A stretch of DNA of 64,000 bases from Dimorphilus gyrociliatus (lineage: Eukaryota; Animalia; Annelida): assembly GCA_904063045.1 (NCBI GenBank), contig CAJFCJ010000016.1, forward strand, positions 806,001 to 870,000, given 5' to 3'. The translations under genes and the position numbers were made by a program. A model generated the notes under the pieces. That model saw only the letters and a program-made list of their open reading frames with translations, searched no databases and was not told the origin of the DNA. Below are positions 577 through 63,397 of this stretch, piece after piece. Numbering within the stretch: the stretch's first letter is position 1; every line of letters begins with the position of its first letter.

Positions 577-1562
577 CGTGTGAAAAGAGTCTATCAACAT
601 TATGTCTGATAATAAGCCCGTACAAGATCCATCTAATACTGAAAAATGTTATATATAGTATATTAACACTATATAAAAAGAAACGATTGTAGAGAGGGGC
701 AGAGAGAGTAAGAGTTAAAAAAATGGTTCAGAGAATACTGTTTTTAAAGCCAACTTTACCATATGACGGCTCATATACTGGTTCAAGTTTTATATATACT
801 GTATATACTGTATATAGCATACAGGAAAAAGTCATATATTAAATATAATATCGTCAAAGCCCATTCTGTAAACTATTTAAGCTATATTACATTGGCCTAT
901 TTTCACAATTGGTATCTATTTGAGTTGTTTATTAACCTCTTCTAAATGAAAAAAAAATGTCTATGTAATTAATGTTAATAGGGAAATGAACATGGCATAT
1001 GTTACTTTACACATAGTTTGTGAAACTATTTTGGTTTATAGGCCTATCTCTTTATAATTGACAATACTATTTCGCTTTTTATATCTTTATACTTTATAGT
1101 ATGAAAAAAGTTAAGTTTGAAAAAAAAAATTGAATAAAAATTCTTTTATATCAAAGAAAGAAAAAAAATGAAAAGAAAAAGAAACTAGTATTTTCTTTAG
1201 ATTTTTTTCTTTCTTTTTTTAACTCCCTCTCTTTCTCTCTCTTCTGTTTTCTTACTCTGGAAAGTATTATGACTCTTTCTGTTATTTTCCTTTTACTATT
1301 AATTGTTTATTCTATGAATGTTGTTAAAAATAAAAATGTATACAGTGACAGATGGATGTAAAATTATCCAATATATACGTATATTGAGTATAAAGCTTCT
1401 GACGTAATATCATATTTAATACAATATTAAATGGGAATGGGAGGACATGTGTATTTGTGTGGGTGGGGTAAATTGGCTGATATAGATTCGATTTATAAAA
1501 AGGAAACATGCAAACATTAACAAGTATTGAATAGTTTATAGATTTTCTCTTTTTAAACATAG

Positions 1563-4500
1563 ACAAAAAGAAGTTGAAATTACAAAAGAAAGTTCAAGAG
1601 CGGAAATCTTAGCTCAACAACCAAACTTTAACGAAAATTGCTGTATGAAATGCTGTAAAAAGCTAGTATTATTTATTTAATAAATTAATATATACTGTAT
1701 ATAATAATAATAATATTAATAATAATTTCTCTCTATTCAAAAACAAAATGCAGGTTTATTATTCTCTTTAATCCTAAAGTTAAATGCTCTTCCTGCGAAT
1801 TCAATTATTGTAAAAGTTGTTGCATTTTCATTAAAAAGAAATCTGCATACATATGCAAAACTTGTGATAATGACAAACAGTTAAGTGCCTCCACCTGTTC
1901 GTGGTTTTACGACGGTGTTAAAAAGAAGTAAGTTTTGTACTAAACTTTTATAAAACATGCTATATACAGTATAATTATTCGTCTTTAATAGATTTAGAAG
2001 ATTTGGTAGTGCTAAAATAGTGAGAACTTTAATACAAGCTCGTTCACTGTCCGATGAAGAAGGTATATATAAATACAGTATATATATATACAGTATATTA
2101 GTGTATATAGGTATATAGTCTATTCAAAAAATGACTAATTAGCATATTTTATATAAAAATGTTATTTAATATCATTTTAATTGAAAATGAATGAAATAAA
2201 GAGTAAGAGAAGAGAGAGAGAGAGAGGGAAAAGAGAAATTATGTTTAGATAAGATAAAAAGAAAATATACTATAAATTCTCTTCTCTTATTATTTTATTA
2301 CCATTTGAACTCTATAATCGATTTTTTAAAACATGTCAAGTTTTTTTTATTAAGAAAGCTATAAAAAATAAGATATTTAGCATATTTTTTTATATTAGGC
2401 CTATATTTAACTATTTTTTTCTTTCTTCTTTAACATTGCTATCTATTTATCTATTTATCATATTACTTTGTTCTATAGCTTTTTTTTTTCTCTTTTTCAC
2501 GTTACTCTCTTGATTCCTCGTTACTCTCTCTTTATCACTTTATCGCTATTTCTTCGCATGAGCATGCTATAACTGTGTTTTTAGTTAAACGTCTTCTTTA
2601 TCGCATTTTGTCCAGATTGCCAACGACATGCTAGTGACGACGAAAGACAGCGGCCAAGATATGGGCCTACAACAAGCGTTCAAGGTTTATTCGATAAAAT
2701 GATATATTTGAAGCATTCAGGTAGCCGATATGAGTGTAGTGATTACCATTTTCATTCTAGTATTCCTTTCAATTTTTGCGGTGATTCTAATTGTCTTTCG
2801 TGTGAAAAAAATTAGAGTAGTTGGTTGGTTATTTTATAAACGAAGGGATGATTTATACTTTCATTTTCTATATTTGATTTTATATATTGGTGACCTCAAT
2901 TGCTAAAAGGAAAGGCAACAGTATGCCTTTTTTATATATAATTAAATAAATAATATTCATATCTTCATTCAAGTCAACTCGATTACAATTTAACCTTTAA
3001 AGCAAAACAGAAGTAAAATTCAAGTTTTATCATCAAATTATATGAAACTATATTGAAAAATAAATATGAAATGACTTTTTTTCTTTATTATTAAATGATA
3101 TAGAAAAGAGAAAAAGCCATTTTTTTTTGATTTCTTTATCTTATATGATTTATCTGCTACTTGAATGCTAATATAATTCAAACAACTTGAAATAAAAAAT
3201 ATTTAACAACTGTACACTATAGCAGATCTGAAAGAGAGCATCGACACGTTGAGAGAATCGTTACAGTCCGCTGAAAAACGTCTATTCTCCGAATTAGACA
3301 ATGACACCAATGAAGTTCGATCTCTAGAAGTCTGTAAATGTTCAATAGATGACGCCTGCAAAACCTTTCTCCAATCGAACGCTAATTCATCGGCAGCAAG
3401 GCAGGAACTACAACGTCAATTGTGTATATTCGCTGGAGAAGACGAGTTGGACCAAAGCACTTCAGATTACGGTTCGGATATTCGAACGGATTCAAGCGAA
3501 TCTTTAATAAATTCGCTATACAAGCGTTACCGAGAACGTCAAGAGAGGTTTGTTCTTAGGGCTCTGGAGAAATTATATAACGATTGCGTAATCGCACACC
3601 TGATGAACAGAATCAAGGAAGACGCTAGCACCACGGATTTTCGGTCACTTTCTTCTTTAGAAAGAGACGAATCGGTAAGCGAAGAAATTCAATCAACAGT
3701 CGTTCAACTAAATAGTCAAGTTCCCGACTCCGATCTAACAACCAAGGAGGATATAAGCCATTTGAAGACTATTGATGTGTCTCAACAAAGCCCCAAAAGC
3801 TTCTTGGATCCCTCCGCTGAACAGGATGAAGACGTTGACCTAGAAGAATTAGAATCGTTTTGTTCAGCTAAAGAAACTTCGCTACCTCACTTTAATACAA
3901 CAATTTCAAGTCTAACGGAAACTGATCCTGATTTGCTACAAATGTCATTAATTGACTACGAAGCTTTGGATACTCTCAAAGAACAGAGAGAATTAGAAGA
4001 AAATGGGAAAATAGAAGAAAGGAAAGTTGGAGAAGGAAAAGATGGCGAAGACGAAGAAGAAGAAGAAGAAGAAGATTTTGACATTGACGATGACGTAAAT
4101 ATGGAAGAGGAAGTATCATTGCGTTCAAAACCAGAATATAATTTCCGACCTCCAACTGAAAATGTTTTCAGTCCTTACAAAAATATGAAAAATTCAACAA
4201 TCATTGGCGAAGATAACTTTTTAATGTACACTCCCGAAGGTGACAACTCCCAACAAGAAGTGTTGTCGGACGACGACAACCTTCCAAGCGATATTGATAG
4301 ATTCTCAATAGATAGCGAAGAAGAGGATAAACTAGAGAATTTAGACGAAAGCTATCTGGATTCACCATCCAAAATCGATATAGACGAAGGTTAGTAGAAG
4401 AATTTCTGACAACTTTTGACATATGTAATTTTTATTGCGTGCAATAAATATATTAGGAATTTCAAAAGGATAGAAATACTATACAAGTATATATAAAACA

Positions 4501-7171: not shown

Positions 7172-7662
7172 AAAAGGAAAGAAGAAAATTGAAAACAATA
7201 GAAATAATATATGATAAATATGAATAAAAGTACCAAAATTAACTCTTTCCTATCCTGTGTCTATCTCTTTTTTGTTGTTTTTATACATCGGCCAATAGCT
7301 GTAAAATTTAGCCATATAATATAAAAATATGAATATATACAGTATATCTATAATTTAAATCCTTTTTGTTTTCTAATTAAAATATTAAAAATTAAAAAAA
7401 TATACAAACTATGCAAACGTCAATGTTTCTTCTTCGTGGATATTAAATACAAAGATAAACAATTAAAAATCATTCCAAGCTTTGTTTGTTGTTAATTATT
7501 TTATTAAAAGAATGTTATATTTAATATAAAATTTGTCTATTCAAAAAGAAAAGGTAAAGAAAAAAGGGAAAAATAAACAATTCTATAGGAAATATTTCGA
7601 AAACGAAAATAATTATGCAAATTAGAAACAATATACGAAAGATAAGAAAATTCTTTCTTTTC

Positions 7663-13809: not shown

Positions 13810-15762
13810 ATGCCGACTAGTGAAATGAATGTTCAAGGTCAAGGTCAGTCGACGGCGTCTAAAACGCCGACGTCTACAATTCTTCAGCAGACTACGGCCA
13901 ACGCTCAGCAATTTATCGTCACGAGTAAGTTTTTGTAAGCGGTGTTTACATAGTTTCTATGGTAGCATGAGAAGGGGAAGCCAGAGGGTGTATGATACTT
14001 TTATGCTATTAATTAGAAAGAGTCAATAGGTATAAAAGTTTTCCGGTGACAATTTCTGTTTTAGGATTGAAATTATTAATTAGGGATTCCGTTACCTTTT
14101 TCTTTTGTGTGAAATCATCAAACCGGTAATGAAAATTGTAATGATAATTACAATTAATGCATATATTACTGTATGCATGTATGTAATTATACATGCATAT
14201 GTATATATAAATGCATTTATATATTATTGTTAAAATTACAGATATACGGATATTCTATTTTCTTTATAAAGCTAATAGTATGTCAGTTAGCGTTTGTCAA
14301 AATGAACAGCTATCCTCATAAAATTAACTTGTAAACACACGAACTTACTAAATAAAACTTCGCAATCGGTTATGTGTCAGGAAAAAAATGATGATTGATT
14401 GGAACATAGTAATTAATTTACATAATACACTGTTTCATCTTTAAATGAGGATATGAATTACAATGCTAGGCCATTTTATTAATTGAACGAAAAAACAGTA
14501 CATATATATATATATATACAGTATATATATAATTATTAAATCTTCGTTTGCCAATTTAGCTGCTTTAGCTATTTTAAGTCAATGGAATATTAAACGTAAT
14601 GAAACTTTTCGACTATAAAACTGATTGGCCTTTAGCTGACAATTGTTTAACTGACTATTCACTAAATTAAGATTAATTAGCTATAATTAATTATGGAAAA
14701 TGAAGTTTTTAATGTGCCTTTTTTTAGTTACTAATCCGTCATCGAATAACAATGGATCTTCTGGAGAGTCAAATTCTGATGAAGGGACAACTGTTCAATT
14801 GCAGAGCGGAAATGGACCTCAAATGATCTACCAATCCAACAATCAATCTCAACCACAGTACGTTGACTCCTTAAGCGACTCCGGCGATGCCGTATCCTAT
14901 CAGTCTGCATCGGCTGCGGAAAATGAAACAACTTTACCTACCGCAATATTACGGTAGGGAAAAAGATGGATTTTGTCGTTTCACTTTTAACTGTTTTCTT
15001 AGGACCACTGCTACCGATCCTTAGCATAAAAATATTTCAATGATATCATTCCTTTGATGTCGCAATTTGTAATCTTAATCGCGCCATCTAGATGTAAAAA
15101 AATACCATATTTCGACTTGCTTACGCTATGTAGTTGCACCAACTCCCAACAAAATATTTAAAGATAGAGTTTAAGAAAGTCGTAAACAAACCGAAGGTAA
15201 TTAAGAATTTAATGCTAGAGCATTGGAGAAATATTATAGAACTATTAAGACATGTATACGCAGAATATCGGTAGTAGTGGGTATCAATTTGTTTGTTCAA
15301 ACACTTATTTCTTTTCTCACCTTCTAATATTCGAGAGCCATCTAACGTTTGTTGTCTACAAAACTTACACTTTTCCATTGGGCACTGGGCAGACTGAATT
15401 GATGATGGCATCATCGGTTTCCTTTCCCAAAGTTTGCAATACTTTGTTTGTTTTGATTTTCATTTACCTCACTTTCTTTTCAAAATAAACAACGTTTGCA
15501 TAAAATTGTTTTACTAGAGGGAAAAAGGTTATTAAAGAAGTGAAGAATGAAATCGAATTGCAAGAAATAGATCTTGTCGTGGACGGAAATGTTTGCAGGT
15601 TCTCATTTAGGCAGTATTGACGGCAATTTATGCAGCTTTCATCATTACTACTCCATATAATTACAATATCATTAAATGATACACGTAAAACTAATAATAA
15701 TAATATGAAATTATATACATGTATATAAACAATATATATATATTTATATATTTATATTAATT

Positions 15763-15798: not shown

Positions 15799-18700
15799 TT
15801 ATGCTGCATAGAAATTGTTGTTTTGGCAAAGCTTTTTATCTTGGTGGTTGCATAATTTCTTTACGGTTTATTTATTATTATTTTTATATTTTGCATGCTT
15901 TATACAACACTGTCGATCATATTTCTATTTTTAACGATTGTCTTTTTTTTTTTACAGACAATATACAGAATATAATTCCAGTGGAGGCATGTACACTCCA
16001 GTAACTGGAGCTACCTACTATCAAACACAAAGTGGTCATGTTCAGGTATGCAAATGGTTCACCGTTTATATAAGAATTCTTAGAAGAGCTTATGTAAAAT
16101 ACAATAATAGTGAAAATTATTTCAAATACTTTTCATATTTATTCTTTTGTATTTACTTCAATAGACTGCGTCAACTGGCCAAATTATCAACCATGGAGGA
16201 AGCATGTTCCTTGTACAAGGTACTAACGTTACTACTGATGGAGGAATAGGTAATCATACGACAAGAGCCTCTCCTGTTACGGTAAATATTAAAAAACTGT
16301 TTATGGGTAACAAATTTTTAAATGGTCACATGATGAATTTTTTTGTTTATTGTAAATTTCTTTTATAACCTACAAATGGAATACTGTATTATCTCTGAAT
16401 AATCTTTACATTTAAAAATTCAATTAACGTATTTTCTCACCATTTTATTTTTTTCACGTGTAACTTTTCAGTTAATTAAAAAAAAAACAAAGAAAGAGTA
16501 ACTACTTTATTTAGGTAAACTATTTAAAAATCAGTCAGTTTAACGTTTGGCTAAGAATAATATTTCTCTTTCTAATTTAAAAACAATACTGTCTATTTAA
16601 TTGAATTAATTTATTATTTACTTCTCGAGTTAACTAGAAACGTACTTAATGGTGAAGAAACGCGATAAGCATAAACAATACTAGATTGTTAATTTCCACT
16701 AACACATATTTGTAGGTTTTTATTTTGGAGGAGGAAAGAATAAGCATAATTTTGTCTAGTGAAAGTTTTTTTATTTAATTTTTCTTTTCAATTAATTGAT
16801 AATATATTTGATTAAACTGAAAAAAAAAGAAAAAATGGAAAAATTGTAAAGGCAACGTGAAGCAGACCACATAATAAAAAAAGAATTTTTTTTTTTAATA
16901 TTTTTATTTTTTCAAAATAGATTCTCTTTTCAGTTTTATGTGTAGACTTCTTTTCTAACATTCGCAGGAACAGAACGGATCTTCTTCTTGCCCTCGAACG
17001 GCCAACTTCGATGCCAAATCGTGGCAAAGAGAAGTGAGTGTTCGGTTTACAAAAAAAACAAAAAAAATGCCTTTCCTGGCCGGGTCTGCATGTTCACGTT
17101 GTCTCTAGCATGTCTAACAATATCATTTTTTGTATTGTATTTAATATCACGTGATGAAGCTTGTTCACTGTTTCTTCAGCGCGAATTGTCGTTGCTTGTC
17201 GCCTTATCGCTGTTAAATTACACTTTGCTTGCTAAAACAGAATTAGTATTTTTTTTAAAGGTTAGACGTAGAACGTTTACTTTCTAAGGTTTAGTCCAAG
17301 TAAATATTCAGTTTTACATCCGTATGCATATATTTGGTAGCAAAACGATAAAACCATATATGTATATGAGGATGTAAATTAACTAATAACTGAAAATGAG
17401 AATACTTTTCGTGTTTCGTCTGAAACGTATACTTTGATATAGCATGTGACCTTCGCTATAGAGAGCAACAATGAGAAAAATAAGAGTCAATGGGTATCAT
17501 TATTACATTTATTAGTTAAAACTGTAATCACAACTTTAAATTAAACATTTTATTTTTTATAAAGTAATACTTTTACTATTCAGTTCTCTTTATTGAAGAC
17601 TGTCTATTTTTCTACAGTATACTATAATAGATTCAAAATATTTCCATTAGATTTTTCTTTTCTCTATTCTATTTTCTATCGTCTATCTAGTATTTTCTCT
17701 GTTGCTCTCTTTTATTATTCAGATACTTGTGTTTCTGTATAACTTACGTATAATAATATTTAAAGACAGAATTTTATACCCGAACGTAGATTATATGAAA
17801 TTATTGTTAATTGGTTGTGTACTAAAATTTCAGGTTCAATGGCTGTTGGATAACTACGAAACAGCGGAAGGCGTCTCTCTACCCCGATCAACTTTATACA
17901 ATCACTATTTACAACACTGCAATGAGCATAAGATTGATCCTATGAATCCCGCTTCGTTTGGAAAGTTGATTCGATCAGTATTTTTGGGACTAAGAACAAG
18001 GCGCTTGGGTACCAGAGGCAATTCAAAATATCATTATTACGGCATAAGGATTAAGGCGTCTTCTAATCTGCATCAATTTCCCGACGAGCAAACAATGGCC
18101 ATGAGACAAACTCCGATGACTCAGGCTGGTAAAAAATTTAAGGGGGCTGGAGCTGGCGGAGTTGTTGGATCAGGAGCGGATTTGAATCCTGATAATGTGA
18201 TATCTGGTATTGATGGACAACACCAACAGTACTTGGGCGATCATTCAGCAGGATTATCGCCATTTGAAAGCATCAAAGTTGAAAATCTTGTATTGCCTGA
18301 AGGTGTTACTATCCACCACGTTCATGCTCTTGAAGAATTGTATAAAGAGCATGCGGAAGCTATTTTAGACGTGGTAGTTAATTTACAGTTTGCTTTAGTT
18401 GAAAGATTATGGCAACAATTTTGGAGGAATGTACCACCGAATCAACCACCCACCGTAGATTCGGACGACGATGAAGAAAGATTACCAAAGAGTACCTTAT
18501 ACGCTTTGTGTAAGCTTGAGCCTGTTCAAAAATTTGTTAAGTCGGCTGACTATAATTTCTATCAAGTTCTCGTCGAAGTACTTATACCCGATGTTCTTAG
18601 ACCTATTCCATCATCTTTGACACAGGCTATAAGAAATTTTGCCAAAAACCTTGAAGGTTGGTTGAGGGAATCAATGACTGGTGTAAACGAAGGTATGACT

Positions 18701-19813: not shown

Positions 19814-21993
19814 TGTATATCTGATAATTTGGCTGCTGATACGTATACTTCTTTGAACCTTTCACGAAAAGTACTTTCTTGAATGTTTGTCTATTTCCAA
19901 TGGTTTGTGTTCATACTTTTTATCATGTTTGTTGAGTTTTTCTTGTGTTTTTTTTTTTTTTGCTTCTGTAAATAAGCTTTATTGTACAGCAAAATTATTT
20001 TGTACAGTACAAGTGCAGTTGTTATAAAAGAAAACTAATTTTACTTTTTTGGTAATAAAGTTGTCACGTTTGAATGTTGAAAGCTTTTTCTTAAGAAATC
20101 GTTATATGAGATGAAATGGATCTATGATTTTAGATTCGTTAAATATGTTTAAAATTGTCACAATTTTTTGAAAAATAATCTTGTTAAAGTTTTATTTCTC
20201 CACTTTCCCTTAATTTTCCACTTAACTTTTATACTTTGTATCGTATTTTACACTCTAAATTCCCTCCTCTCCTTCCCTTCCACTCCAATTATTCAGCATA
20301 CTAAAGTTTCTTCAAATTTCTTTGCTAAAGATACAAAAGACAATCCCTCTCCAATTATCTTTTTCCTATTGTCTTTCTCAAAGCCTATTTACCTTTATTG
20401 TATGAAAAGTAACAGATAAGTGAACTATGTGTACTCCTTATGCAAAATATTCTGTCTTTAAAAACTATTATGCACATGTATAATAATTAATTATGTGAAA
20501 TATACGTAAAGCGTATTTGTTACATATTTATGATGCGTAATTGAAGTTTTTCTGTGTGCACGTCTGGGTCACTCAATTATCAACGTTTTGATAAGAATGT
20601 GTATTGTTTCACAAGGATAAAAATTATGCAATGAATTAATCAATCTTCTATCGAATAATAAAAGGAAAAGCGATTGTTTGTTGAATATTCTCTTACATTT
20701 ACTGTATATTTTATATATGTATATGTATAATCTAGGCCTAAATTTTGTAAAGATGAAAAATGGTGTATTAATACGAATAAGAACACTTTGCGTATATTGT
20801 ATAGAAAGGTTTATATGTACATTTCTATTCATTTACTCTTTTCTCTTTTGCATTATTTCTTTATTCGCCAGATTATTCACAAAAAAAAATAGTTATTTCG
20901 CTTTGATGATAAGAAAGTCAGCAAATAATGATGGTGAGATCACGTTGCGCTCAGTCAGTCGTTTACGATTTCACTGGTATTTTCCTGTTTATGCCATAGT
21001 CGATTTATGTAAAATTTGCATATACTGCATATATAATCTAATGCTTTAAATGCAATATATACAATGTATATACACTCTATATGCTCTTATATTTATATTC
21101 ATTTAAATATAAACCTTCTGAGATGGATAGAGAAGAGTAATTTCTTCGAACAAGCTTTATTAACATTGATAAAATCGTTACCTGATTATGTAATCAATCT
21201 TCCAGTAATTTCAAATTCTCATGTATATTATTAGGATCTTTTATCGATAATTCTATTCCACGCTGAATATTTGGGAAACTTAGGAATTTCTCTTACATAT
21301 TTAAGCCATCTTTCTCATTTCTCTTTGGACTATAAAATCTGATTTCATACCCTTTGTTGGAGGCATTTATTGATTAACTCAACTTTTAAGTTATATCCTT
21401 AATGTTTTTTTTTTATTCCTTTACATCTTCTTCTCCTCCTCCTCCTCTCTCCTTAAATCTCTCTATTCCTCTCCTTTCTCTGTCGCCCTTCTCTTCTTCA
21501 CTTTCTCCTCATTTTTATCTAATCAATTAGATATAATAAAGATTTGTAAAAGGAAAACCGTTACAAATAGCAGTGTGTTGTTGCAGTGATACAAATGAAA
21601 CCTGGGAAGGAAACTATGTAATATAAATCCTAATTGATAAATTTAGTAATCGAGAGGCCAAGTAAAATATTCTCACTTTATCTCTCTTTATTAGATAAGC
21701 TTATGGGATAAAAACACAGTAAATAGTCTAAAAATGGAAATATACAATGACAACTGAACAATTATAGATTGTCTTACAAACGTAAAAGATTCTGGCTAGA
21801 TAAACGGACGAGAGGAGAGAGGAGAAGAGATAGAGATAGAGAGAAAGATAGATAGATAGACGGAAAAATAACTCCACCCCAAGTTAGAATTCGTCTGCTT
21901 CTAGGTTATTACTATTAATATTATTATTATTATTACTATTAAGTTTAAAATTAATTACGGCTTATTAACGTCATTGGCGTATTTTGCAGAAGA

Positions 21994-23879
21994 ATGACGA
22001 ATAAAGAGATAATTGTATCTTCACCTATAGCGGATCTTGAAATACCTGACAATGTGAATTTTTCTTCGTATATTCTGCGAGAGGCGGAAAAGTATTCAAA
22101 TAATACATGCCTGGTTTGTTTATTAGATATCCTATTATAAATACCTTCGAATGGGTGCTTGTAACCGCTAATTTCTGTCCAGATAAATACGGCCTATACT
22201 AGGGAGGAATTAACGTACAAGGACTTTATAGAATTGGTTTATAACTTTGCCCTAAATTTACAAAAACGTTTCAAAAAAGGCGATAGAATAATGACATGTT
22301 TGTCAAACTCTTTTCACGTTCCTATAATTGCGCATGCTTCCATGCTATCCGGAATGATATTCTGTCCTGTCAGTCCATCTTATTCAACAAGTATAGAATT
22401 GCTTTTAGTTACAAACTGCAATTATTACATATTGAATTTGCAGTCGAACTGGAACATGCTGTCAAAATTATCAATCCTCACTGCATATTTGCGGGAAATT
22501 CGACTATTGAAAAATTGAAGAAGATGGCATTAGAAAAAATTTGCAATGTATTTAAAGAATAAATTTAAATTTCTTTTCGCCTTTATGATGTTGACAAATA
22601 TTTCTAGGTCATAAGTAATATTTACGAGATAGATGACTCTGGTAGTGTTGGATCATTTTGTGGATTTTTAAAGGAGAAAACTAGTATAAAACCTACTTTG
22701 GAAACGTGTAACGGGAGAGAACAAGTAGCAGCCATTTTGCTATCGAGTGGTACTACTGGTCTTCAAAAGGCAGTTCAAATAACCCATACAAACTTTATAG
22801 CTCAGAATTACGCTGTCAGGTGTTTAATATAAATTGTTTCCTAACAATTAATACTTTTATATATATTATTTGATGGTAAAAACTACTATAAATCCATAAA
22901 TAATGTATGCTATTACGTTTACATAGGCATCCCTATTATGACGATGGACAACACGGTCAAGAGACTGTTATTGCTACTGTGCCTCTGTTTCATGTTTTTG
23001 GAATAGTTGCTTTTCTATCTAATGCTCTCTTTAAAGGTAACTGATAGGATTAGCTATAAATCCTTCTATTTTACAAACCCTTTTGTTCGCTCTGTCCCCC
23101 TTTAGCTACTGTATATATCCATTATTTCGCCCCCAGGTTATACCATTGTTTTAATGCCTAGATTTCAACTTGAAAAGTATATTGATACTGTTTACAAATA
23201 CAAGGTAGGACTATTCCAAAAGAAGAGAAACTCTATACTCTTCTTTTTATTTTAGCCTTCAAACGTCAACTGTTTATTTATATCATTTATTCAGGCGACA
23301 ATTCTTCACGTTCCTCCAAAGATTGTTGGCCTTTTGGCAACAAATCTCCACATCAATCCAAATCATTTGAAGAGCGTTAAGGAACTTCGAGTAGGCTCCT
23401 CAGCTTTAACAGTGTTAGTAAAATGTCCAGTTCCTTTTTATTCAATTTCTATATATTTCTTAAAAATTCATTTATTAACAGGACTTTGGTAGAGAAAATT
23501 AAGTCCAAGTATCCCTTTATAAAGTGTATTAAACAAGGTTATGGCCTAACAGAATGTACAGCAGTATGCCATATGCAAACTCCAGTTTATGGAAAGCATT
23601 GCGTTATTGGATCAGTTGGATGTTTAGTACCGAATGTGAGGGCAAAGGTTGTCGATATAGATACTAGGAAAAGTCTAGAGGCAAACAAACCTGGAGAAAT
23701 TTTAATTCAGGGACTCGTTGTTACTAAAGGTTATTTTAACAATGACGAAGCTACAAGGAATACTATGGAGGGTAATTGGTTAAAAACTGGCGATATAGGC
23801 TATTACGACAATAAAGGGAATTTTTACGTAATTGATAGATTAAAGGAATTAATCAAATGTAACGGATTCCAGGTAATTT

Positions 23880-23920
<41 letters not shown>

Positions 23921-26289: not shown

Positions 26290-27487
26290 TAGAAATGCAA
26301 ACTTTATATATATACTGTATATATAAAGTACTTGAACACTATATTCCTTTTGAAGGATGGAGTGGGTTTAAACGAATGGAATACTGTTGAAATTGTTGAA
26401 TAAACGATTTTTTTTGTTCAATGGCGCATTTTCTCAATCGATTTATTTATAATTAGAGAAATAAAATGTTGCTTTTATACCTTAAATGAAATTGTGTGAT
26501 TGTTACCTAAAATAGCATCTCTTCTCTCTCTCTCTCTCTCTCCAGTCCCCACTCCCCTTCCTCCACCCTCCTATTTTTTTCCAACTATTTGATACTGGTG
26601 TTAATTTAATAATAAATCAATTATTTTATAAATAAAACGTACCGTAAACAATGATTTTATCTTTTCTAGTACGCTAACCAGTTATCGCATAGATCTATCT
26701 ATTCACTACTTGTTATATTCATTATTTATTTATTATTCTCATTTAAATTGATAAAATCTATATTATCGCTCATCTAAATGCATTATATTAACAATAACAA
26801 TATACACCAATTAAAACGATTACATAATAAAATACTCGGAATCGATTAAAAGAAGTATATTATTAATATCATTAATATTTCTATTAGTAATTTATTATTA
26901 AGAAGCGGCGTTTTTCTCCTTGTTAATTTGAGAGATTATTGAGATGTAAAGACAATGTTTAGTAATCAGCTGTTTCTAATATTAGCATTACTATTAATGC
27001 ATCGTTATTTCTTGCTTGTTATACATTTTTATATGAAAACGAGGTCTGTTGGACTGTCAATAATGCTCAGCTTGTAGGTATATTGATCAAGGTAAAATAC
27101 CGACTGAATACAGAATTCAAGCACAATTCATATCTTTTCGTAATGGTAAATTATCGCTCACAGGGAATATAGTCTTTTACTATTACTGATTTGTATAAAA
27201 TATTGATAAATATTATTTAAAATGATCTTTTATATAAGATACTAATGACGTAAACTTAAATATGGAATATGGGGTATTGGTTGAAAGTAGTACATTGGAA
27301 CAGGCTGGGGAGAAGATATATACTACCCTAGAATTACATATATAAATATATAAACGAAATACCTTTGTGCGTCCAGTGTCTGCGTTTGAATTGCGGTAGT
27401 TGGACGATATCACATACGCAATTCGAATATTTGCATATCTCTCTTCCTTAAATCGTAAAATTAAGAAAGGATAACCATAGAGAAAAG

Positions 27488-43106: not shown

Positions 43107-44742
43107 TTTTAATACACTAACCCCCTTTTCGACTATCTTATTTATGCTCTCCTCTCCCGTAAATGATTATGATTATTCAACAAAATGTCCTTTTTTTCCC
43201 ATTCAAACAATTTTGTATATTCTAGCTTTCTCTTGGTTCATAAACTAGTTCAATTCCTCATTCAATCTCTTTTTTCCTTCGTTTGTTTCTTTCTCTCTTT
43301 TTCTTTCATTCCCCAATTCTTTCTTTCTAATTCTCTTCGGTCCTTTAAAAAAGCGTTTTTCTTCACCTCTAGGCTATTTTGGTGAATAATGACAGCAAGA
43401 TTTCAAGTAAAACTGAGTAGTAGAGTATATATTTCAAGTGATTTGCAATAGCCAAGTAAAAATAAAAGACATTCTTTGCAAGGGTAACGCCCTGAAGGTC
43501 GTCGCAATCCATCGTTATATATGCTAACGATATGCCAAAAAAGGACGAAATGTGTAATATAAAAATCTTTACGTTTAAGGTTGTATTTGCATAATAAAAA
43601 AGAAAATGATCTTAGTTTTAGCAGTTTGTTTGAATTGTTTGCTAAGTCTATTGTTATAGTAGTATATAGGTTTTATTAAAGTACATAATAAGATAAGGAA
43701 AAGAGAAGATTTTTAGAATAAATTAACTTTTGGAACAATATGGAAACTATATTCGGCAACCGATTGATGTTTAGAGAAAAAAACCTTAATAAACAATAAT
43801 TATATTATTAATATTCAAAATTCTTTAACGCGTCTATATACTAGTTTTATAGGACTAGTTAAAGTGTAGGTGTCTAACTCATCTATCTCATCATATATTT
43901 CTTCTTACTCCCACTGTACACTCCCTTCTGCAATCTCTAGCATTTATTTTGTCTATAACCTCCCACGCATAATTTTATATCTACCCAACAAGCGTCAGTT
44001 AGGGTTTCTAATTGTATAGACTCTTAGTAGTCTATATCTATAAAAGCGAAAGTATATTTCGCCCCCTCACCTACCCCCTTCGGCTTTCTATTCCTCCCCT
44101 CCACCTCTCCATTATACGTTCAAGCGTGTTTTACTACTACCAGTAGTACTACTAACACCACCACCACCGCCACTCAGCTACCAACAGGTCTGCCACCACC
44201 GCTATCACCGCATTACAAATACCGCCGCCACCGTTTCATTTTCAAGCAAAACAAAAAAAAATGTCATTGATTTTCCAGTGACTTTCCAACCGCAAAGTAC
44301 GTTTCTGTAATTCACTAACCAAAACCAATCATTAAAAGCCACTTACTTTTACAAAAAAAATCCTCAAACAAACCACATAAAACCAGACAAATGAAATCGC
44401 TTCCCACATATTGACCTAGACGACTCATGCGAACTACAGGCCCTTAATATAAAATCTTACTATTGTACTAGTAACCCATTTGGTAAAAAAATCTCTTATC
44501 GGAATGGTGCGTCAAATATTTAGTGATTCCAATGCAAGAATGCAAGTATTTCTTATCATTGTATTAATTTTTAATTATGATACGATTAACAATAGCTTTG
44601 CGTTGCTATGGTTATTAGTAAAAGCTAAATAAGACTATATATATACTAATATATATGCGTATACTGTATATTATTGTTTATTATTATTGTTGTTATTATA
44701 TTGTTCTGTTTTCTTTTTTTTCGATTGCATTATTCGAGCAGG

Positions 44743-47616: not shown

Positions 47617-49579
47617 ATGAGAAATATGGAGAAAGATTACCATCCACCCGGAAACTGGTTTACTTCGATGAGGTTTCTCGTTGCTTTATTAGGATTTTTT
47701 GGCTTTTTTAATATGAATGCAATGAGAGGATCAATGAGCTTTGCTATTGTTTGTATGGTTAAACCAGTTAATTTAAACGTTACCACTTGGTCGAATACTA
47801 CAAATACGACCTTATACTGTCCTTGGGCCGTTCGGACGGGTAATCATGTAAGTTTTCATCTTTTCCGTTCAATTACGCTAATCTAGAGTCTGTATATATT
47901 TATTCTAGAAATTCTTAAAAATAGATGGCGTTAGTAGTTAGTAATAGGAAAAATAGATAAACAGTTAGCTTATTTATATATATATATATATATATATACT
48001 TTATACTGTATATAATTGAGGATATTCTATTTATTCAATATTATTCTACTTGTTTTTTTTTGTTTTTTAAAAAAACAAACAACATAATTACAGACAATAG
48101 AAGAATCATTTAGTAATGAGTTTGCATGGTCGAAAGAAATACAGAGTTTGATATTAGGTTCATTTTTCTGGGGATACTGCATATCTCAAATACCCGGCGG
48201 TTGGTTGGCTGATTCTATCGGTGGTCGTAGAATACTTACCTTCGGTATACTTCTCGCCTCGTTATGCACCCTATTAGCCCCAATTGCTGCAAGGTTTCAT
48301 TATATAACTCTCATTGTTATAAGATTTCTAACTGGATTAGGGTCTGGAGTTTCTTATCCAGCGATGCACGCTCTTTGGGGAAAATGGGCTCCACCTTCGG
48401 AAAGATCGAGATTAACTTCTATAAGTTACGCCGGTAGTATGCTAGGAGTTGTATTAGTAATGCCGATATCAGCGTCCTTCTGCGACTCGAGAATAGATAA
48501 TGGATGGCCATTAATATTCTATACTTTGGGTGGTTCAAGTTTATTATGGATAATTCTATGGCAATTCTTAGTAAGCGATACACCGGCGGAAAGTAGGAGA
48601 ATCTCTAGAGCGGAGAAGGATTATATAATAAAATCGTTGAAAGATGTAATAACCTACGATGAAAATAAGGTAAGAAAATAAAACAGCATCTCTATCTATC
48701 TGTCTGTCTCTCTATCCTTCTCTCCATCATTCAATTCCTATTCTCTTTTCTAACAGTTGTCCCATTTCTGTTCGGTACCCTGGCTATCATTTGCTAGTTC
48801 GATGGCTGTCTGGGCAATAGTTGTTGCAAATATAACATCGGATTGGGGAATGTATACAATAGAAACAAATATGCCTACCTATTTAGCGGAAGTTTTAAAA
48901 TTTGATGTAAAATCAAATGGCTTCTTCTCAGCAATACCCTATATATACTTTTGGATTAATATCCTAATTAGCGGTCTAATTGCCGATAAACTACGATCGA
49001 AGTGCTTAAGTACCAAAAATACAAGAAAGCTCTTGAATACTTTTGGTCAAGCATGTCTCTGTATAAGTTTTATAGCAATATCCTTTATGGATTGTACAAA
49101 TTGGTTGGTGGCTGTAATAATGCTGGCCATTGGAACAGGAGCTATTGGTTTTTCTTTTAGTGGTTTTTTGGTTAATCACGTTGATATAGCTCCAGCCTAT
49201 GCAGGCGCATTGATGGGTATTAGTAATTCAGTTGCGGCACTAGTATCTGGTTTTGGCGCACCTTATGTTATAGGAATTTTAACTCCTGATGTAAGTAAAC
49301 TCTTCCATTCAAGAATTTTTATTCAAATTCACAAAATTAATTAATAATAACAGTAAATTATTCAATTAATTAACATTTTCGCATATTTACAAAGTCTTTT
49401 AAATCACACAGTCAACCCCCGAACAATGGAAGACTGTATTTTTTGTCGCGGCAAGTGTTGTAGCTTTTGGGGTCCTAATATATGGAATATTTGCACAAGG
49501 AAGTGTTCAAGAATGGGCTAAACCAAAGTCGATGAAAGAAAACAAGGAAATGGTTAAATTAACAGAATTAAATGCTTAA
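47617..49579 (+). CDS. SLC17 (sialin-like) MFS anion transporter, about 502 aa. Exons 47617-47847, 48094-48669, 48757-49290, 49412-49579
   Basis: ILGSFFWGYCISQIPGGWLA, YPAMHALWGKWAPPSERSRL, NHVDIAPAYAGALMGISNS, EQWKTVF..GSVQEWA. Confidence 0.93.
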
Positions 49580-49989: not shown

Positions 49990-52900
49990 TCAAAACATAC
50001 TTATTTCCGGTAATGACGCCATTGAGTGGGCGTATGGTCGTCCTTCTCCAACCACTCCACTTCCAGCGCTAATCACAGACATAGTCCTTCTAGACATTAC
50101 TGCCTCTCTTGTGTTCTTATGAGGTCTAAATATGCATATATATACTTTTGGAGCAAATATACACGATACAGCAATCAATGCATTGACCGTAACTGATAGT
50201 GAAATAGCTATAGGCCTTATTGTATAGAATACAAAGAAAGTTGGGAGGAATGCTACCCAAATTACCCATGTAGAATAGGACGTAAAAGCTATGAATTTCG
50301 TTTCATTGAATCCATCAGGAGTTTTTCGTGTTCTGATTGCGTAATAAGTACAAGCAAGCATTAGAAGTAGAGGATATATTAGCGGTACCAAGAAGCTAGT
50401 ATTCGCTAATCCTTTGCAAATTAAAATATTACTATCCCGTGACGGATAAACAAAAGTTGAAGTTGGCTGTAGAGCAACTAACCACGAGATGAGAACGAAT
50501 ACTTCTATAGAAAGCAGGCATAGAACTATGAACATTTGAGACTTTGGACTCGTTAACTTTGTCTTTTTAGTGACTTGTTTCGGCTCAGTTGGAAATAGCC
50601 TGTAGACTCGATTCGTCTTTGTGAGTATAGGAGCGTAGAGAGCAGCATAACAAAATCCGACTAGAAATCTGCTCGCTCCACACGTTCCTCTACTAGGTTT
50701 CGCTAAAAAGATAAAAGAAGATATGCAACAAAAGGCGCAAGCTCCGAGAAGAAGTGCGCTTAATTCTCTGGAAGACGCCTTTATAACCGGTGTATCTCTG
50801 AATCTGAACATGACTATTCCAACTAGTATAATTATTAATAGACCAATCGACGATACAACCAAACTTGCTATTGCAACCGGATGAGTATAATCAATGTATT
50901 GAGGTTCCATTGCAATGCAAGACTTTTGTTCATCGTCTGGTTTGGTTCCATTTGGGCAGTCTACACAAGATTCTTGAAATCCAATCGAAAAAACCCTACT
51001 CCACACCGGGCATTTAATGCAACTCCAGCAACAAGCCAATCCAATTCCACCACTAAATTTTCTAATTTCACCAACACCGCAATCCTCCGAACATATTGAT
51101 GAATTATAAAGGGTTGGGATATCTTCATCCACTTGTAGGAAAGTTTGATTTGTATATTCGCCTTCAACTTGAGTATATACACCGACTTTATGCCAACTAT
51201 CGTCAACCGTATACCTATGTTGCAGAGGAATTAGATATAAATCATAATATATATATATATATATATATCTAAATATAAAAGAAAAGTCATAGAATAATAT
51301 TTAAAGTTGACGACGGTCTTTTCTTTTCTTTCTTTTATCTTTTATCAGAAACGGTAATAATACTTTTTGATGTTTCTGTGGCAAACACTTGATATTGAGT
51401 TGAATTAATTTTTTCGCAGTTGTTAAGTAATAACGGTAATAAGATAAAGAAAAGGATAAAAGAGATAGGTGCAAAATGTTATAGAAATAACGTCCAATAA
51501 ATTATATGTACCTATAAATTATTATTTTATGTGTCCTGCTAAAAGAACCTATTTCTTCAACTCTAATCGGATAAGATAACTAGACACGTGTTGACCGAAT
51601 GCTCAAGTTTTGTTTTGACCCAATTACCTTAGAACTGAATATCTTGGTGGTCCATCAATACCGCCTTGAAAATAGAATGGAACGCCGGATATACCAGTAA
51701 ACGTTGAATTTCTTATATATTTGATCAGCGTTGATCCAGAAATATTCCCAGGTCTCAATTCGCTGCAAAATTCATTTGTAGATCCGCAAATATCCTTATA
51801 CATTCTAGAAAGAGAGTCGACAAATACTTGAACAGCATCGTATACGTAATGTAGAGATGGTATTTGTTCATAACCATTTTCTGGTCCAATAATAGCATTC
51901 TCATCGCAGTAGTTGTCGCTGTTTCTATTTTCGTCGTTAAATGAACAATTAAAGTGATATTCCCAATATTGTTTGAACCATGGATTCCTCGTATTGTTGA
52001 ATGGTTTCAAGCTGGAAAGGTAAAGCAATATTTAAAAAACCAGCAATTTATTTAAACAATAAGAGAGATTTTGATAAACCTTTGAAAGTATTCGTCAAAG
52101 TTAGGTATTCTAAAGGCGTATGGTTGAATTGCTAAAGCGTTATTGACAATTTCTTTATGTTTCTTTACAACCGACATCCTTCCTGCCCAACCGTCGACTC
52201 CTAGCCAATAAATTGTTTTATTTAAACCAACTTGATCGGCTGCCTCGAATAGATAATCCGCATTTGTATAATCTAAATAAACTATTACAGCTTTTGCCTT
52301 ATTTTTATTATCGGTAAGGGCTGAAATAATGGCTTTATACTGTCTTAGTCCAGGCTGGTTGACTCTGACTTGAAGAACTTTTTCAAAGCAAACATCGTAT
52401 AATGCAGCTATACCGCTTAGCTCGTAAAATCCCCTTGTACCGTAGTTCGAATTCTCGTATACAATCGATACAAACGTCCATTTCATTTTCCTTAACAAAC
52501 TCAAAATTGCGTTCACTTGAATGCTATCGGAAGGTACTGTTCTCGCTAAATATGGAAATCTAACTACGTTACTAATATCTGACGAAGTTGATTGAGGAGA
52601 TATTTGTGGAATGTTAAACACTCTGAACATATTGGCAAGGGCCATTGTTACTCCCGATGAAGATGCTCCAACAACTCCGATCATTCTTTGCAGGGCTTTC
52701 ATATCCGATTTAAGTATTGGTTTTGTATCATTGCTGTATAATTTTTAACAATAAAAATTGAATTATTCAATAAAATAGCTATTTAAATTGAATAATAAAA
52801 ATATAGTTAAAGTAATAACAATAAGAATTCATGAATATTCATTAAGTGCTTATAAATTTGAATATACAGTATATATTGTATGTAATGAAATTGCGAAACA

Positions 52901-54110: not shown

Positions 54111-56614
54111 TGCAGTTTGGCTGCTGTTTTTTTTTTGGTATATAATAAAATCAATAAAACTTCCGAAATCGTTTAATTTTAATTGTAATTGATTTTTTTA
54201 CCATTGATTTAAAATTAATCGGCGTTTACTTTGAACTTTAGACATTTCGCTTTAAGCTCAAATTAGGCCAAATGAGAATGTTGAGTCAGTATCCTCTATT
54301 TCGAACGAATAAGAAAACAAACTTGTACTTGAAGATAAAGAAACTTGAATAATTAATAAAAAGATATCATTCTTATGTTATGGAATATTCTCTTCCTTTA
54401 AAAACTAAACAACTAACTTGCTATTTGCCGATCAAAAGTCTTCTACGAGGAATAATGAATCACTAACCCTGACCCAGCCCACTTCGTCTCTAGATCTAAC
54501 AACAAATAGATATTAGTATCGATCTCGTATCGATTCAAACTGAATTAGCTAATGATAAAACATAAAAAAAATGAAATTACTTTTTCAACATTTTCTCGAA
54601 TGTAACGCCATCTATTGGACGCTCTCTTTCTCTCTGTCCCTTCCTCCTCTCCCGGCTGGAATGTAAGGGAGGAGAGAAGGAAAGAGAGAGTGAGAGAGAG
54701 AGTAAATTTTGGAAGTAGATTGAGAAAGAAAAATATACCTGTTTTTAGATGAATTTCAAGGATTGAAACCGATTAAACTTTTAATGGAAAAGGTAGAAAA
54801 ACTTGAATAAACAAAAGTCGATTAATAGACATAAATGAATACCTGAAAAATTGATGTTCATTTACTTAAAGGAATGTTTTTTTGATAAAAAGGCCAACAT
54901 GTGGTAAATTGTTATCAAAACTTTTTCAGGTGAAAAAATTCTCTCTTTCTCTCTCCACCTTGATCTTTGTGTATATATGTGTGTGTGTATGTGTATTTGT
55001 CTGTTTGTGCGTCTTTCCTTAGTCTCTTTTATTTATTTCTCTATCTCTATCACTTTTCTTTCCTCTTTCTCTCTCTCTGTCTCCCTCTCTGTCTTTTTTT
55101 AAGCCTACAAAATGAAGCGACGTAATTCAACCTAATTACAAGCCGTTTGTCATCATTTACCCTAGTTTGCTGAATGTTTTTGACAGTTATTTCGATTGAC
55201 GTTGCTTTCATTTTTTTTATATTCCAATTTTAAAAAAAAAAGAAAGAATATAAAGAAAACAGTAGCGATTATTTTTTTATCGTAACTTTCAAACTCTACG
55301 TTGCAGAGGTCACAGAATGTTAAAACTGGTAGTAATTTGCCGCATAGCTTCCGCATAATTATCCAAGCTGTTAATAATTATTTAAATAAGTTAAATATCG
55401 ATAAATTAAATGAGAATATTAAAAGTATATATAAATTGTGTAAATTACCTTAATAATAACATTAGATGATGGCCTTTTTTTAAATTTAATTGTTACTTTT
55501 CTCTTGTTTGGGAATGCGTTAATGGCCAATCCGGATATTGTAAATATTTGCCTACAGTTGCTTGTAGCTGTTTGCAATTTGATACTCTGTTTCCTAAGAT
55601 CCTCTTGCAAATACCAAGCATCCGTTGCAAGAAATCAAATGATTTATTTAATAGTAAATAGCTTTACTAATTTCTTTACCAAAAGCCTTTTAGCTATTAG
55701 AAAACTTTATTAACGTAAGTTATTTAACTTTACTCTCTGTCTCTCTCTCTCTCTCTCTCTCTTCTTTTTCTTTTATTCCATTCCTCCTTCCTTCCCTATT
55801 TCCCTATTATCACTATTCTATTTGTTATATACGTATGGATGGATGGATGGATGGAGAGATATATTCTAGGATTTTTTTTTATCTACGTTTTCCGAGAATA
55901 CACTATATCGACTAGTAATAGAGATGACGCTGAAGGCGTTGGGCGTCTATTCGAAAATATTCAACCGACTTATTTTTTATACGATAGAAGAAGAAAGAAA
56001 GATTCTATTAGATTAGTGTTTTTTTTTCTTTCAAATCGATTATTTTGAAAGAGAGATTTTGTATATATTGCTTGTGACGTCACATAAAAAAATTTTTTTT
56101 TCTTTACCAAGCTTGGTTAAGATTAGCTGTGGTAATTGTTTTGATTAGAATCTGTCTATAGCACATTTGTTTTAGTAGCTGTTGGCGTCCGATAGTTACT
56201 TTACTTTTCTTATAGAAAACATCTTTAAGAGTAGAGAATAGAAATCTTTAATTTATTTATTGTTTACTAAACAATTAACTAGCTAATTTCAAAAAATTTA
56301 TTATTTCTAGTATGTTTAATTAACTAATTAACTAATTTACTTAATTAATTAGCAATTAATTTGCATAAAAAAGGTTGTTATTCAATATTGCGTATACTAC
56401 ACAGTACGTAAAATATCTTATCTATTATCTCATTCTTCCTTTATTATATTTGTATATACAGTATATATCTATATCTATGTCTATATATCTAAATAGTGAC
56501 TTGAGTTAATTCTATCTTTAATGTTTTAATATTGGACGAATATAGGATGATATTTGAAAAAGGTTAGTCCTCTTTTCCATTTCTCTTCTTTCTTCATCTT
56601 CTTCTTCTTCATCA

Positions 56615-56661
<47 letters not shown>

Positions 56662-56810
56662 GCTCCTTCTCATCTTCAGTTTCTTTCTTAGGGAATGTGA
56701 AAGTATGGGTTTATTTCATGTTTGAAAAAAGTAATCCTTCTCAAGTACCGCAATTATATATAATCTTTCAATTTTCCACTCGTAGTTTGTCAATATTACA
56801 GTCACTTTCA

Positions 56811-57020: not shown

Positions 57021-57046
57021 TAGTAGATACGATTGAACCTCAAATT

Positions 57047-57964: not shown

Positions 57965-58003
<39 letters not shown>

Positions 58004-58283
58004 TTCGGTTTTATGTATTCGTTTTGTCAATGACTCGTCTTTAAATGTATACAGATACAAGCAGACACGCACAGACAGACACATAGATATTTATATAAAT
58101 ATATAAGTATATTCATATATATGCCATGGGAAAAATGAAAAAAAAGTTGGATTTGTAATATTTAATACCCTGTTCTATATTAATAGAAATGAATGAATAG
58201 ATGAATACAATAATGATAATTAAAAGAAAAGCAAAAAGAGAAGGAGGTTAAAATAGCAACTAATCTTTTTACATTCTAGTATA

Positions 58284-58325
<42 letters not shown>

Positions 58326-58937
58326 ATACTGCTATATACAGTATTTATACACAGAAAAGGTACTCAATATTATGTACAAACAGCAAACTATAAAGAGCGC
58401 TTTTTGTTAATGATTAAAGTGCTTTATTTCTACTTTGTGGACTTACAGAAAAATAGATATGATTATTTATTTAAATAACTACATGCTTAAATTCTGTATA
58501 TATATATATATATATACATATATATTTATATGTGTGTAGAATAAGATTGCATAAAATTAATTAATACTCTCTCTCTCTCTCTTCCCCTCTGTATGTACGT
58601 CTGTCTTCATCACTGTCCAAGAATAATTTCTTCTCTCCAGCACACACACGTAGACTTATTAAAATGTATACATCTACTTAAAAACAATACCTATACATAT
58701 CACATAATGATGTATTCTATCTACAAATTAGGTTTAAACCATCGTAACCTTACTCTAAAATTGGCCTTGTTTCTAATTATATTTTTATTTAAACAATATT
58801 TTCATCCTCTCTGTTTACATGGGCTAATCAAGCGCGTTCTCCTTTAATTAGGTAGGACCCGTACAAAGTGTCCGCTAGGTGACGTTCTAGTAAATTCTTC
58901 TTTTCAAATTCGAGGCGTTCGCTGGTTGGACTAGAGG

Positions 58938-59388: not shown

Positions 59389-59419
<31 letters not shown>

Positions 59420-62400: not shown

Positions 62401-63397
62401 TTCAATAAATCTATTAATTTATATATAAATTACAATAAAATCGAAATCTGAGAAGGAAAGAGATGAGTTGATAAAAGGAAATTACTTTTATAGAAAAAAT
62501 GCATGAGATCTTGGTCGTTCTTAGTATCGCTATTCTTATTATATAATCTAATTCTATAATAAATAAATAAATAAATACGGGGAAGGGTGCAAAGTTCACT
62601 CTGCGTTCGACCATTAATCGCCTTTTTCTCTTCACCTCTGTCATCAATCATTCGATTAATGTTCACTTAAATGAGAGAGAAAAAGATGAAAGGAAAGCGA
62701 CAAAGCACGAGGGAGATATATACTGTATATACATATCTCTTGTCATTCTAAACATTTTTTCAACACTAGCAAACAGTTTGGTTGTTGGTTTAGAATGTTT
62801 TTAATTTTGAGCAAAAACCAAAAACCAAAAGGAAAAAAAAAAACCTCAAGATCTTATGATAAAAACTTTCCAACTGCACGCAGCCAGAGGCTGGAACGTC
62901 TATCAATAACAATCTCGAATATTTTCTACGAATATAAAAAACCAGCATCCTTTCACGGCGCACCGAACTTGACGCTCTGTATTGAAAAAAACGCCTATTC
63001 AACGCCGCCCGGTCGGATGATTATCAATTTATAGTACGGGTTTTTTTTCTCTATCTTTCGTACAGGTATTGCTCGAGCATCTTCACCTACCACTTCCGCT
63101 ATTTCGACACCTATAACCAGTTTGGACGCCTCGGAGATTATGGAGAATTTCGACAGACCCAGAAGAGCTAGTAGTAGATCAAAACAAAGAAAAAAAGACA
63201 AGAAGAGAAACATGCTACCAACTAGAAGCCAAGATGATAATTGTAAACAATCTAAATTGAATAGAACTTACTCAAACGAGTATAAGATAAAAAAAGTTGT
63301 ATTTGATGGATACGACATAACAACTCGTCCAGTTATGAATGATAGCGTTGCTATGACAGTTGTAATTGGAATGTCATTATATCATATCCTTGATACG
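58938..63397 (+). CDS. Cys-loop ligand-gated ion channel subunit (nAChR-like), 3'-partial. Exons 58938-58971 and 63066-63397
   Basis: Splicing (phase 1) gives the signal peptide MLVICALFLCTSIARA. Exon 2 ends EYKIKKVVFDGYDITTRPVMNDSVAMTVVIGMSLYHILDT|GTAAGT, the alpha1/beta1 start of Cys-loop extracellular domains. Confidence 0.8.
59368..59462 (+). repeat. (GAA)n microsatellite with AGAAGAAGTCTA and GAACAA variant units
   Basis: Direct reading of the sequence. Confidence 0.9.
59964..60210 (+). repeat. Compound (CT)n/(GT)n/(CA)n microsatellite tract
   Basis: Direct reading. Many similar (TA)n and (GA)n tracts occur elsewhere, e.g. 537-580, 23881-23915, 43016-43110, 56620-56660. Confidence 0.9.

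Follow-up and report, generated by a model that had tools for sequence, protein, structure and literature searches.

The words TA-C(A/T)G-TA, which recur in a 64,000-nucleotide stretch of the genome of the annelid Dimorphilus gyrociliatus (positions 806001-870000 of contig C16, hereafter the window, in an assembly of 77.9 Mb in 349 contigs), are probably fossil excision footprints of Tc1-family transposons of the DD34E, Sleeping Beauty-like type with 5'-CAG ends. The traffic of cut-and-paste transposons is usually invisible in a single genome, where no countable record is left after their departure. The words described here are strongly over-represented, with an excess specific to one pair of complementary triplets, and sit in the target context preferred by elements that still reside elsewhere in the same genome and whose ends read CAG.

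Enrichment of the word

Exact matches to the 11-mer TATACWGTATA (W, A or T) number 18 in the window, 11 of them with CTG and 7 with CAG at the centre, and the 7-mer TACWGTA occurs 37 times (15 CAG, 22 CTG). The null expectation, obtained from 100 dinucleotide-preserving shuffles of the window, was 0.06 for the 11-mer (maximum 1) and 8.6 for the 7-mer (maximum 16), and none of the 100 shuffles reached the observed counts. The excess is specific to the triplet, as CTG and CAG make up 18 of the 34 words of the form TATA-NNN-TATA in the window, where the next triplet is found three times; likewise, in a separate 200 kb of contig C1 they account for 25 of 71 words, and the next G/C-containing triplet for five. 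The full table of 64 triplets covers these 264 kb, over which CWG totals 43 words against an estimated 1.4 or so for each other class of G/C-containing triplet, a difference of about 30-fold, and it is complemented by four genome-wide word counts. Across the genome TATACWGTATA is present 7,166 times, compared with 150 for its reversed control, 211 for TATAGWCTATA and 268 for TATACSGTATA (S, C or G), and the shorter TACWGTA is present 24,999 times, compared with 12,506 for its reversed control, which leaves a surplus of about 12,500 copies, or about one per 6 kb. The window is richer in the 11-mer than the genome as a whole, with a density about three times the mean (18 seen, 5.9 expected, Poisson P 4e-5). 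CWG is also the most frequent single interruption, of any length, of TATA…TATA in the window, and in the C1 sample it stands level with single-base interruptions. TATACSGTATA itself exceeds its own reversed control (268 against 101), a surplus of about 170 copies genome-wide that could be scars with a transition at the central base, amounting to about 2% of intact scars, and could offer a rough handle on scar age.

At least three TA units, (TA)3, adjoin one side or both in 16 of the 18 11-mers of the window. Long open frames are avoided, with only 2 of 43 11-mers inside them when the window and the C1 sample are taken together; in the window, stop-free frames of at least 100 codons contain 2 of the 18 11-mers and 5 of the 37 7-mers. 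Twelve of the 37 7-mers have TA on neither side, roughly as many as chance would produce, and we therefore regard about 25 sites in the window as genuine signal (18 flanked by TA on both sides, 7 on one), or one per 2-3 kb (Table 1).

The two orientations are nearly equal, with CAG:CTG at 15:22 in the window and 31:35 in the C1 sample. This bears on the idea that the word is a motif acting at the level of RNA, since CUGUAUAUA contains the Pumilio-like UGUAUAUA. Indeed, TACTGTATA together with the following TA contains TGTATATA, and the site at 49974 lies just past a stop codon; yet most sites are intronic or intergenic, in TA tracts, and words in the CAG orientation lack a UGUA on their own strand, which together with the near-equal orientations makes an RNA function very improbable.

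The sequence-only reading of the window had listed these words, and its counts, coordinates and close pairs (797/806, 2074/2089 and 33707/33721) hold at 18 11-mers and 37 7-mers. Its rough estimate of well under one expected 11-mer is borne out by the shuffles, and the enrichment of CAG/CTG over other triplets proved to be about 30-fold relative to G/C-containing triplets in the TATA…TATA frame. It had also stated, correctly, that the motif cannot be derived from (TA)n by a single substitution, as an insertion of 5 bp that is not TA is needed.

Flanking sequence and neighbouring sites

When 103 sites were aligned on the core and oriented alike, information in the flanks was restricted to positions -4 to -1 (T A T A) and +1 to +3 (T A T), and no conservation was found in these sites more than 4 nt to either side of the core. 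T stands at -2 in 72% and A at -1 in 64% of the scars, and TATA is present on both sides in about 57% of the surplus 7-mers, or in about 0.76 per side. Removal of the five inserted bases leaves the target ATA[TA]TAT, which corresponds to the AT-repeat consensus reported for Sleeping Beauty and other Tc1 elements. Since the flank information ends within 4 nt, the sites reflect a target preference and not membership of a repeat family. For Sleeping Beauty the published target consensus is ATATATAT.

The same alignment weighs on a second explanation, by which the words would be remnants of a decayed dispersed repeat, or of a miniature inverted-repeat transposable element, with TATACAGTATA in its consensus. 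The paper describing the D. gyrociliatus genome does report miniature elements with Mariner-type inverted repeats (PMC7854359). Such an origin was tested, and neither extended similarity nor paralogues nor inverted-repeat pairs came to light: BLAST searches with 167-nt windows around the sites returned no paralogues except for one conserved site internal to family A (an element described below) and low-complexity TA matches, and neither the window nor the 200-kb C1 sample has an inverted-repeat pair of the form TA-CAG…CTG-TA spanning 40-4,000 bp. With flanks that carry no information beyond 4 nt in the 103 sites, a dispersed repeat as the source is highly improbable.

Among pairs of neighbouring sites no more than 60 bp apart, 14 agree in the central base and 12 differ, a nearly even split that fits separate events and not local copying. 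Arrays with identical centres spaced by 9 bp do exist, as a triple in the C1 sample and as the pair 797/806 in the window. They are what might be expected if (TA)n tracts were themselves prone to some mutational process, for instance template switching or the processing of hairpins or cruciforms, that acted together with local slippage and needed no transposon, and the fact that the word lies mostly in TA tracts is likewise compatible with it. The change from TA to TACWGTA requires, however, the 5-bp insertion mentioned above; CWG cannot be reached by substitution or by slippage of TA units, GWC and CSG are about 30-fold rarer, and the central bases of neighbours disagree nearly as often as they agree. 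To our knowledge, no intrinsic process in TA tracts inserts CWG, and we consider this origin improbable. The simpler possibility of a plain product of microsatellite slippage and substitution was rejected on the same 5-bp insertion, on the approximately 30-fold excess of CWG over GWC/CSG, and on the sharing of the centre in 14 of 26 pairs.

Candidate source elements

The genome of D. gyrociliatus holds at least 150 matches to DDE_3 and at least 149 to HTH_Tnp_Tc3_2 (a first look gave 353 and 281 candidates, respectively), and many of the Tc1-type transposase matches sit in open frames of 330-363 amino acids. The ends of the elements were read in 24 fetched loci, which revealed at least five lineages with TA-CAG…CTG-TA ends and matching terminal inverted repeats, several of them with intact open frames, and in the best copies of three lineages these repeats are perfect across the first 24 nt. 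Family A (TA-CAGTGAGGGAC…, 1.47 kb) has inverted repeats of about 200 bp and copies that are 97-100% alike, family B (TA-CAGTCTGTCTC…, 2.28 kb) has long inverted repeats, family C (TA-CAGCCGCGGTC…, 1.65 kb) is present in 10 copies, mostly on large contigs, family D (TA-CAGTGTGTAAA…) measures 1.47 kb, and the fifth lineage (TA-CAGGGGATTTC…, 1.3 kb) is degenerate. In BLAST searches of the genome with two whole element loci, a paralogous host copy without the element came to light for family B; its gap is the one that an empty TA site should leave, and both the boundary of the element and the duplication of TA are thereby confirmed.

The family A protein (338 amino acids) comprises DDE_3 and HTH_Tnp_Tc3_2 and matches the catalytic domain of SB100X, as given by its crystal-structure sequence, with an E value of 1.3e-42. 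Its triad of D, D242 and E277 aligns with the catalytic motifs of Sleeping Beauty, and 34 residues separate the last two, as in the DD34E class. Pairwise identity among the transposases of families A, B and C is only about 28-39%, and therefore the CAG end is shared by several old lineages.

The families differ in their distribution. All 17 ends of family A lie on small transposon-rich contigs and most are preceded by TA, whereas the 19 ends of family C correspond to 10 copies on C1, C14 (twice), C19, C24, C28, C30, C46, C85 and C223, and TATA precedes 13 of the 19 (68%), a context like that of the scars. One family C copy (L009, on C14) sits inside a TA tract, flanked by TACTGTA at 6 bp on its left and by TACAGTA at 44 bp on its right; about 250 bp upstream, TACAGTA and TACTGTA stand side by side. 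Such surroundings would be expected of a tract that had been used repeatedly.

Most Tc1 copies are found on small, repeat-packed contigs above about C100 (for example C119, C167, C176, C209, C215, C228, C288 and C328), and some are nested. On C328 a 1,446-bp insertion splits a repeat of about 1 kb, of which at least five other copies there are uninterrupted, and C288 carries an inverted duplicate of an entire family A copy plus its flanks. Three other Tc1-type lineages have different ends, two of them TAGGG… and one CAC…; the Tc1-type ends that are not CAG were read at loci L001, L005, L008 and L013 (TA-TAGGGGGTTTC, TA-TAGGGATTTTC and TA-CACTATCCCC). Overhangs from such ends should be unable to pair with each other and should leave mixed scars, invisible to a word count.

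The window and the 200-kb C1 sample are both devoid of transposase-like coding sequence and of DNA of families A-D. The sequence-only reading had proposed an excised CAG-terminated Tc1 family as the source and had concluded that no element was left. The first proposal gains support from CAG-ended elements that have DD34E transposases and the same preference for TA tracts; the second stands for the window, which has no ends, transposase or family A-D DNA, and fails for the genome, which holds at least five lineages with TA-CAG…CTG-TA ends.

Comparison with a related lineage

Two protein searches led to Logan short-read contigs of a relative (SRR23372216, SRR23372228 and SRR23372231), which are syntenic with the window and, in the blocks where the two align, share 72-80% nucleotide identity. 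The relative appears to be a dinophilid species of its own or else a deeply diverged cryptic lineage. Its contigs L047 (SRR23372228, 10.5 kb), L045, L046 and L048 are syntenic with 47.2-56.2 kb and 33.6-34.7 kb of the window, and the gene order of major facilitator superfamily (MFS) transporter, G protein-coupled receptor (GPCR) and ANF receptor is kept.

Most non-coding DNA is unalignable between the two, and five sites of the window were compared. The site at 33707 has a counterpart in the relative, where the aligned position lies in a TA tract and carries the word with its central base flipped; the word is absent at the aligned place of 33721, absent at 48004 in a poorly alignable intron, and absent at 52865 despite a conserved anchor nearby; for 49974, TATACAGTAT is found about 28 nt away, and its orthology is ambiguous. 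With three sites absent, one ambiguous and one kept with a flipped centre, the comparison, a weak test at this distance, suggests that the word is mostly lineage-specific, and the positional conservation that the sequence-only reading had named as contrary to its proposal was not seen at most of these sites. Because the word is also present in a TA tract of short-read contigs, it is not an artefact of long-read assembly.

These data also bear on a functional alternative, in which selection maintains the word in TA-rich non-coding DNA as a palindromic binding site for a dimeric protein, for instance a transcription factor or a protein of chromatin. The 11-mer is a palindrome around the central W, the site at 33707 recurs at the aligned place in the relative, and a similar word lies close to the position of 49974. 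A binding site would nevertheless have to account for some 7,000-12,500 copies that sit mostly in microsatellites, with flanks that merely continue the TA phase, and for the absence of three of five sites from the relative, where the one that is kept differs at its centre. It would also leave unexplained why Tc1 copies in the same context have ends that predict the word exactly, and why a strict W centre coincides with the CAG ends of resident elements. A protein-bound palindrome consequently seems to us quite improbable.

Proposed origin of the words

In excision by Tc1/mariner transposases, the cut in the non-transferred strand falls a few nucleotides within the element, and after end-joining the terminal nucleotides of the element remain between the duplicated TAs. 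Based on this behaviour, on the ends of the resident elements and on the context of the words, we hypothesize that CAG-ended elements would insert at TA, preferably at the middle TA of ATA[TA]TAT and mostly in (TA)n tracts, with duplication of TA on both sides. On excision, the transposase would cut the non-transferred strand at a point 3 nt into the element, and each flank would keep TA plus a CAG 3' overhang; the outer C and G of one overhang would pair with the G and C of the other, the two central A residues would form a mismatch that end-joining would fix as A or as T, and the net outcome would be the conversion of TA into TACAGTA or TACTGTA, with a gain of 5 bp. An A:A mismatch between two CAG overhangs would explain the near-absence of C or G from the centre (268 copies, against 7,166 with A or T). 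A 3-nt stagger for these transposases is suggested by the 3-nt CWG core and by their similarity to Sleeping Beauty. Repeated over time, the process could have generated the approximately 12,500 intact scars of the genome and about 25 in the window, each of which would once have been occupied by an element, and the elements themselves would survive as a few hundred copies, mostly on small transposon-rich contigs, with at least one family scattered in the TA tracts of gene-rich contigs.

Several points weigh against excision as the origin. A search for paralogues among the fetched loci returned no case of one locus in the empty, occupied and scarred states and no gain of 5 bp, and excision is therefore what we infer. 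The scars outnumber detectable elements by about 30:1, a ratio that would require excision to have gone on for long or at high intensity with no net gain. The 3-nt stagger is assumed from the likeness to Sleeping Beauty. In rice, excision sites are mostly messy (PMC4423477), and the uniformity of the scars, which fits data on end-joining in animals, presupposes that repair in D. gyrociliatus follows the same course. Non-canonical scars are rare, with four copies of the double-overhang scar TATACAGCTGTATA compared with one for its control. Moreover, some of the same-centre runs spaced by 9 bp look like secondary slippage and not like separate excisions, and the scar at 33707 has an aligned counterpart in a relative that is about 25% diverged, though with its central base flipped.

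The window and its sites

The window is ordinary gene-dense DNA with a G+C content of 31%. The published description of the D. gyrociliatus genome gives an assembly of about 78 Mb in about 350 scaffolds, in which transposons make up 4.87% and DNA transposons are of the Mariner and MULE types; the transposons are concentrated in gene-free islands of closed chromatin, miniature elements with Mariner inverted repeats are present, and transposon ages are either old or very recent (PMC7854359). The signal sites and the genes of the window are collected in Table 1. Between 58282 and 58343 a long (TA)n run is followed by a short (TG)n run, and scars with opposite central bases stand at both ends.

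Table 1. Signal sites and protein-coding features of the window (positions are those of the window)
Feature	Position	Strand	Basis
TATACTGTATA scar, first of the pair 797/806, 9 bp apart	795..805	.	
TATACTGTATA scar, second of the pair 797/806	804..814	.	
TATACTGTATA scar	1691..1701	.	
TATACAGTATA scar	1963..1973	.	
TACAGTA, TA only on right, in the same TA tract 15 bp ahead of the 2089 scar	2074..2080	.	
TATACAGTATA scar, partner of the 2074 site	2087..2097	.	
TATACAGTATA scar	7336..7346	.	
TATACAGTATA scar within (TA)n run	14515..14525	.	
TACAGTA, TA only on right, 89 bp upstream of RFX open frame	17613..17619	.	
RFX transcription factor (DNA-binding and BCD domains)	17702-19312	+	open frame, Pfam match
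TACTGTA, TA only on right	20700..20706	.	
TACTGTA, TATA only on right	23107..23113	.	
AMP-binding enzyme	23423-23998	+	open frame, Pfam match
TATACTGTATA scar	26311..26321	.	
TACTGTA, TA only on left; neighbour at 23 bp with other central base	29509..29515	.	
TATACAGTATA scar	29530..29540	.	
TATACTGTATA scar	30702..30712	.	
TATACTGTATA scar, in intron adjoining Prickle-like LIM exon	33705..33715	.	
TATACTGTATA scar, close to the 33707 scar	33719..33729	.	
Prickle-like PET/LIM exon	33777-34301	-	open frame, Pfam match
TATACTGTATA scar, immediately upstream of Zn_ribbon_3CxxC open frame	44660..44670	.	
Zn_ribbon_3CxxC protein	44674-45144	+	open frame, Pfam match
TATACTGTATA scar, adjoining long (TA)n run	48002..48012	.	
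MFS transporter	48148-49344	+	open frame, Pfam match
TACAGTA, TA only on left, 10 bp beyond class C GPCR stop codon	49974..49980	.	
Class C GPCR (7tm_3, NCD3G, ANF_receptor)	49990-52702	-	open frame, Pfam match
TATACAGTATA scar	52863..52873	.	
TATACAGTATA scar	56455..56465	.	
TATACTGTATA scar, at start of long (TA)n run	58280..58290	.	
TACAGTA, TATA only on left, at far end of the TA/TG tract begun at 58280	58337..58343	.	
TATACTGTATA scar	62719..62729	.	

Implications

If the words are excision scars, past transposition can be counted directly, at about one event per 6 kb across the genome and one per 2-3 kb within the window, in a genome of which only 4.87% consists of transposons. The scars would thereby offer a measure of the past flux of DNA transposons and of their choice of target, and would allow a test of whether compact, transposon-poor genomes arose partly through excision. 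The stronger proposition, that gene-rich DNA was cleared of Tc1 elements mainly by transposase excision and not by random deletion, is in our view unlikely. Were it true, the scar count would be a direct tally of cut-and-paste traffic, excision without reinsertion, owing to an excision-biased transposase or to the setting of host repair, may have helped to keep the genome small, and the scars would be the main source of the interruptions that stabilise TA microsatellites. Families A and C, which are intact and have perfect inverted repeats, are candidates for naturally active Tc1 elements of an invertebrate.

Comparison with known systems

The closest parallel is Sleeping Beauty, whose canonical footprint after end-joining repair is 5'-TACAGTA-3' or 5'-TACTGTA-3' and predominates in zebrafish embryos, mouse embryonic stem cells, Chinese hamster ovary cells and mouse somatic tissue (PMC6943129). 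The words of D. gyrociliatus share with it the identical 7-bp footprint, in which two TAs enclose a triplet with A or T at its centre, and the target context of TA repeats, and the likeness extends to the transposase of family A, with its match to the SB100X catalytic domain and its DD34E triad. In contrast, the footprints of Sleeping Beauty come from defined experimental donor sites, whereas those described here are deduced from a surplus of about 12,500 copies of a word in a wild genome.

The Tc1 and Tc3 elements of Caenorhabditis elegans are excised with a 2-nt stagger, target TA, have CAG-type ends and leave end-joining scars derived from terminal element nucleotides. The TA target and the CAG-type ends are found here as well, and the proposed scars would likewise consist of terminal nucleotides of the element. 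A 2-nt stagger predicts, however, CA/TG scars, and TATA-CATG-TATA is not enriched in the window or in the C1 sample; accordingly, the scars fit a 3-nt stagger.

The clustering of the Tc1 copies on small contigs resembles the gene-free transposon islands of the D. gyrociliatus genome paper, in which the terms 'footprint' and 'excision' are absent and the field of scars is not described (PMC7854359). Our literature searches found no report of a genome-wide record of scars at the level of words, and a catfish paper uses 'footprints' only loosely. The nearest catalogue is that of Asian and African rice, in which alignment of the two species identified 94 excisions of DNA transposons, most of them accompanied by deletions or filler DNA and eight of them simple (PMC4423477). 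Both studies read past excisions from genome sequence, and Mariner-type elements, which target TA, are included in both; unlike the rice events, thousands of uniform scars are visible in the single genome of D. gyrociliatus without any comparison. The kind of event is thus a known one, and what is new is its scale and its uniformity in a compact genome, together with the presence, in that same genome, of candidate source elements that are CAG-ended, Sleeping Beauty-like and share the target preference of the scars.

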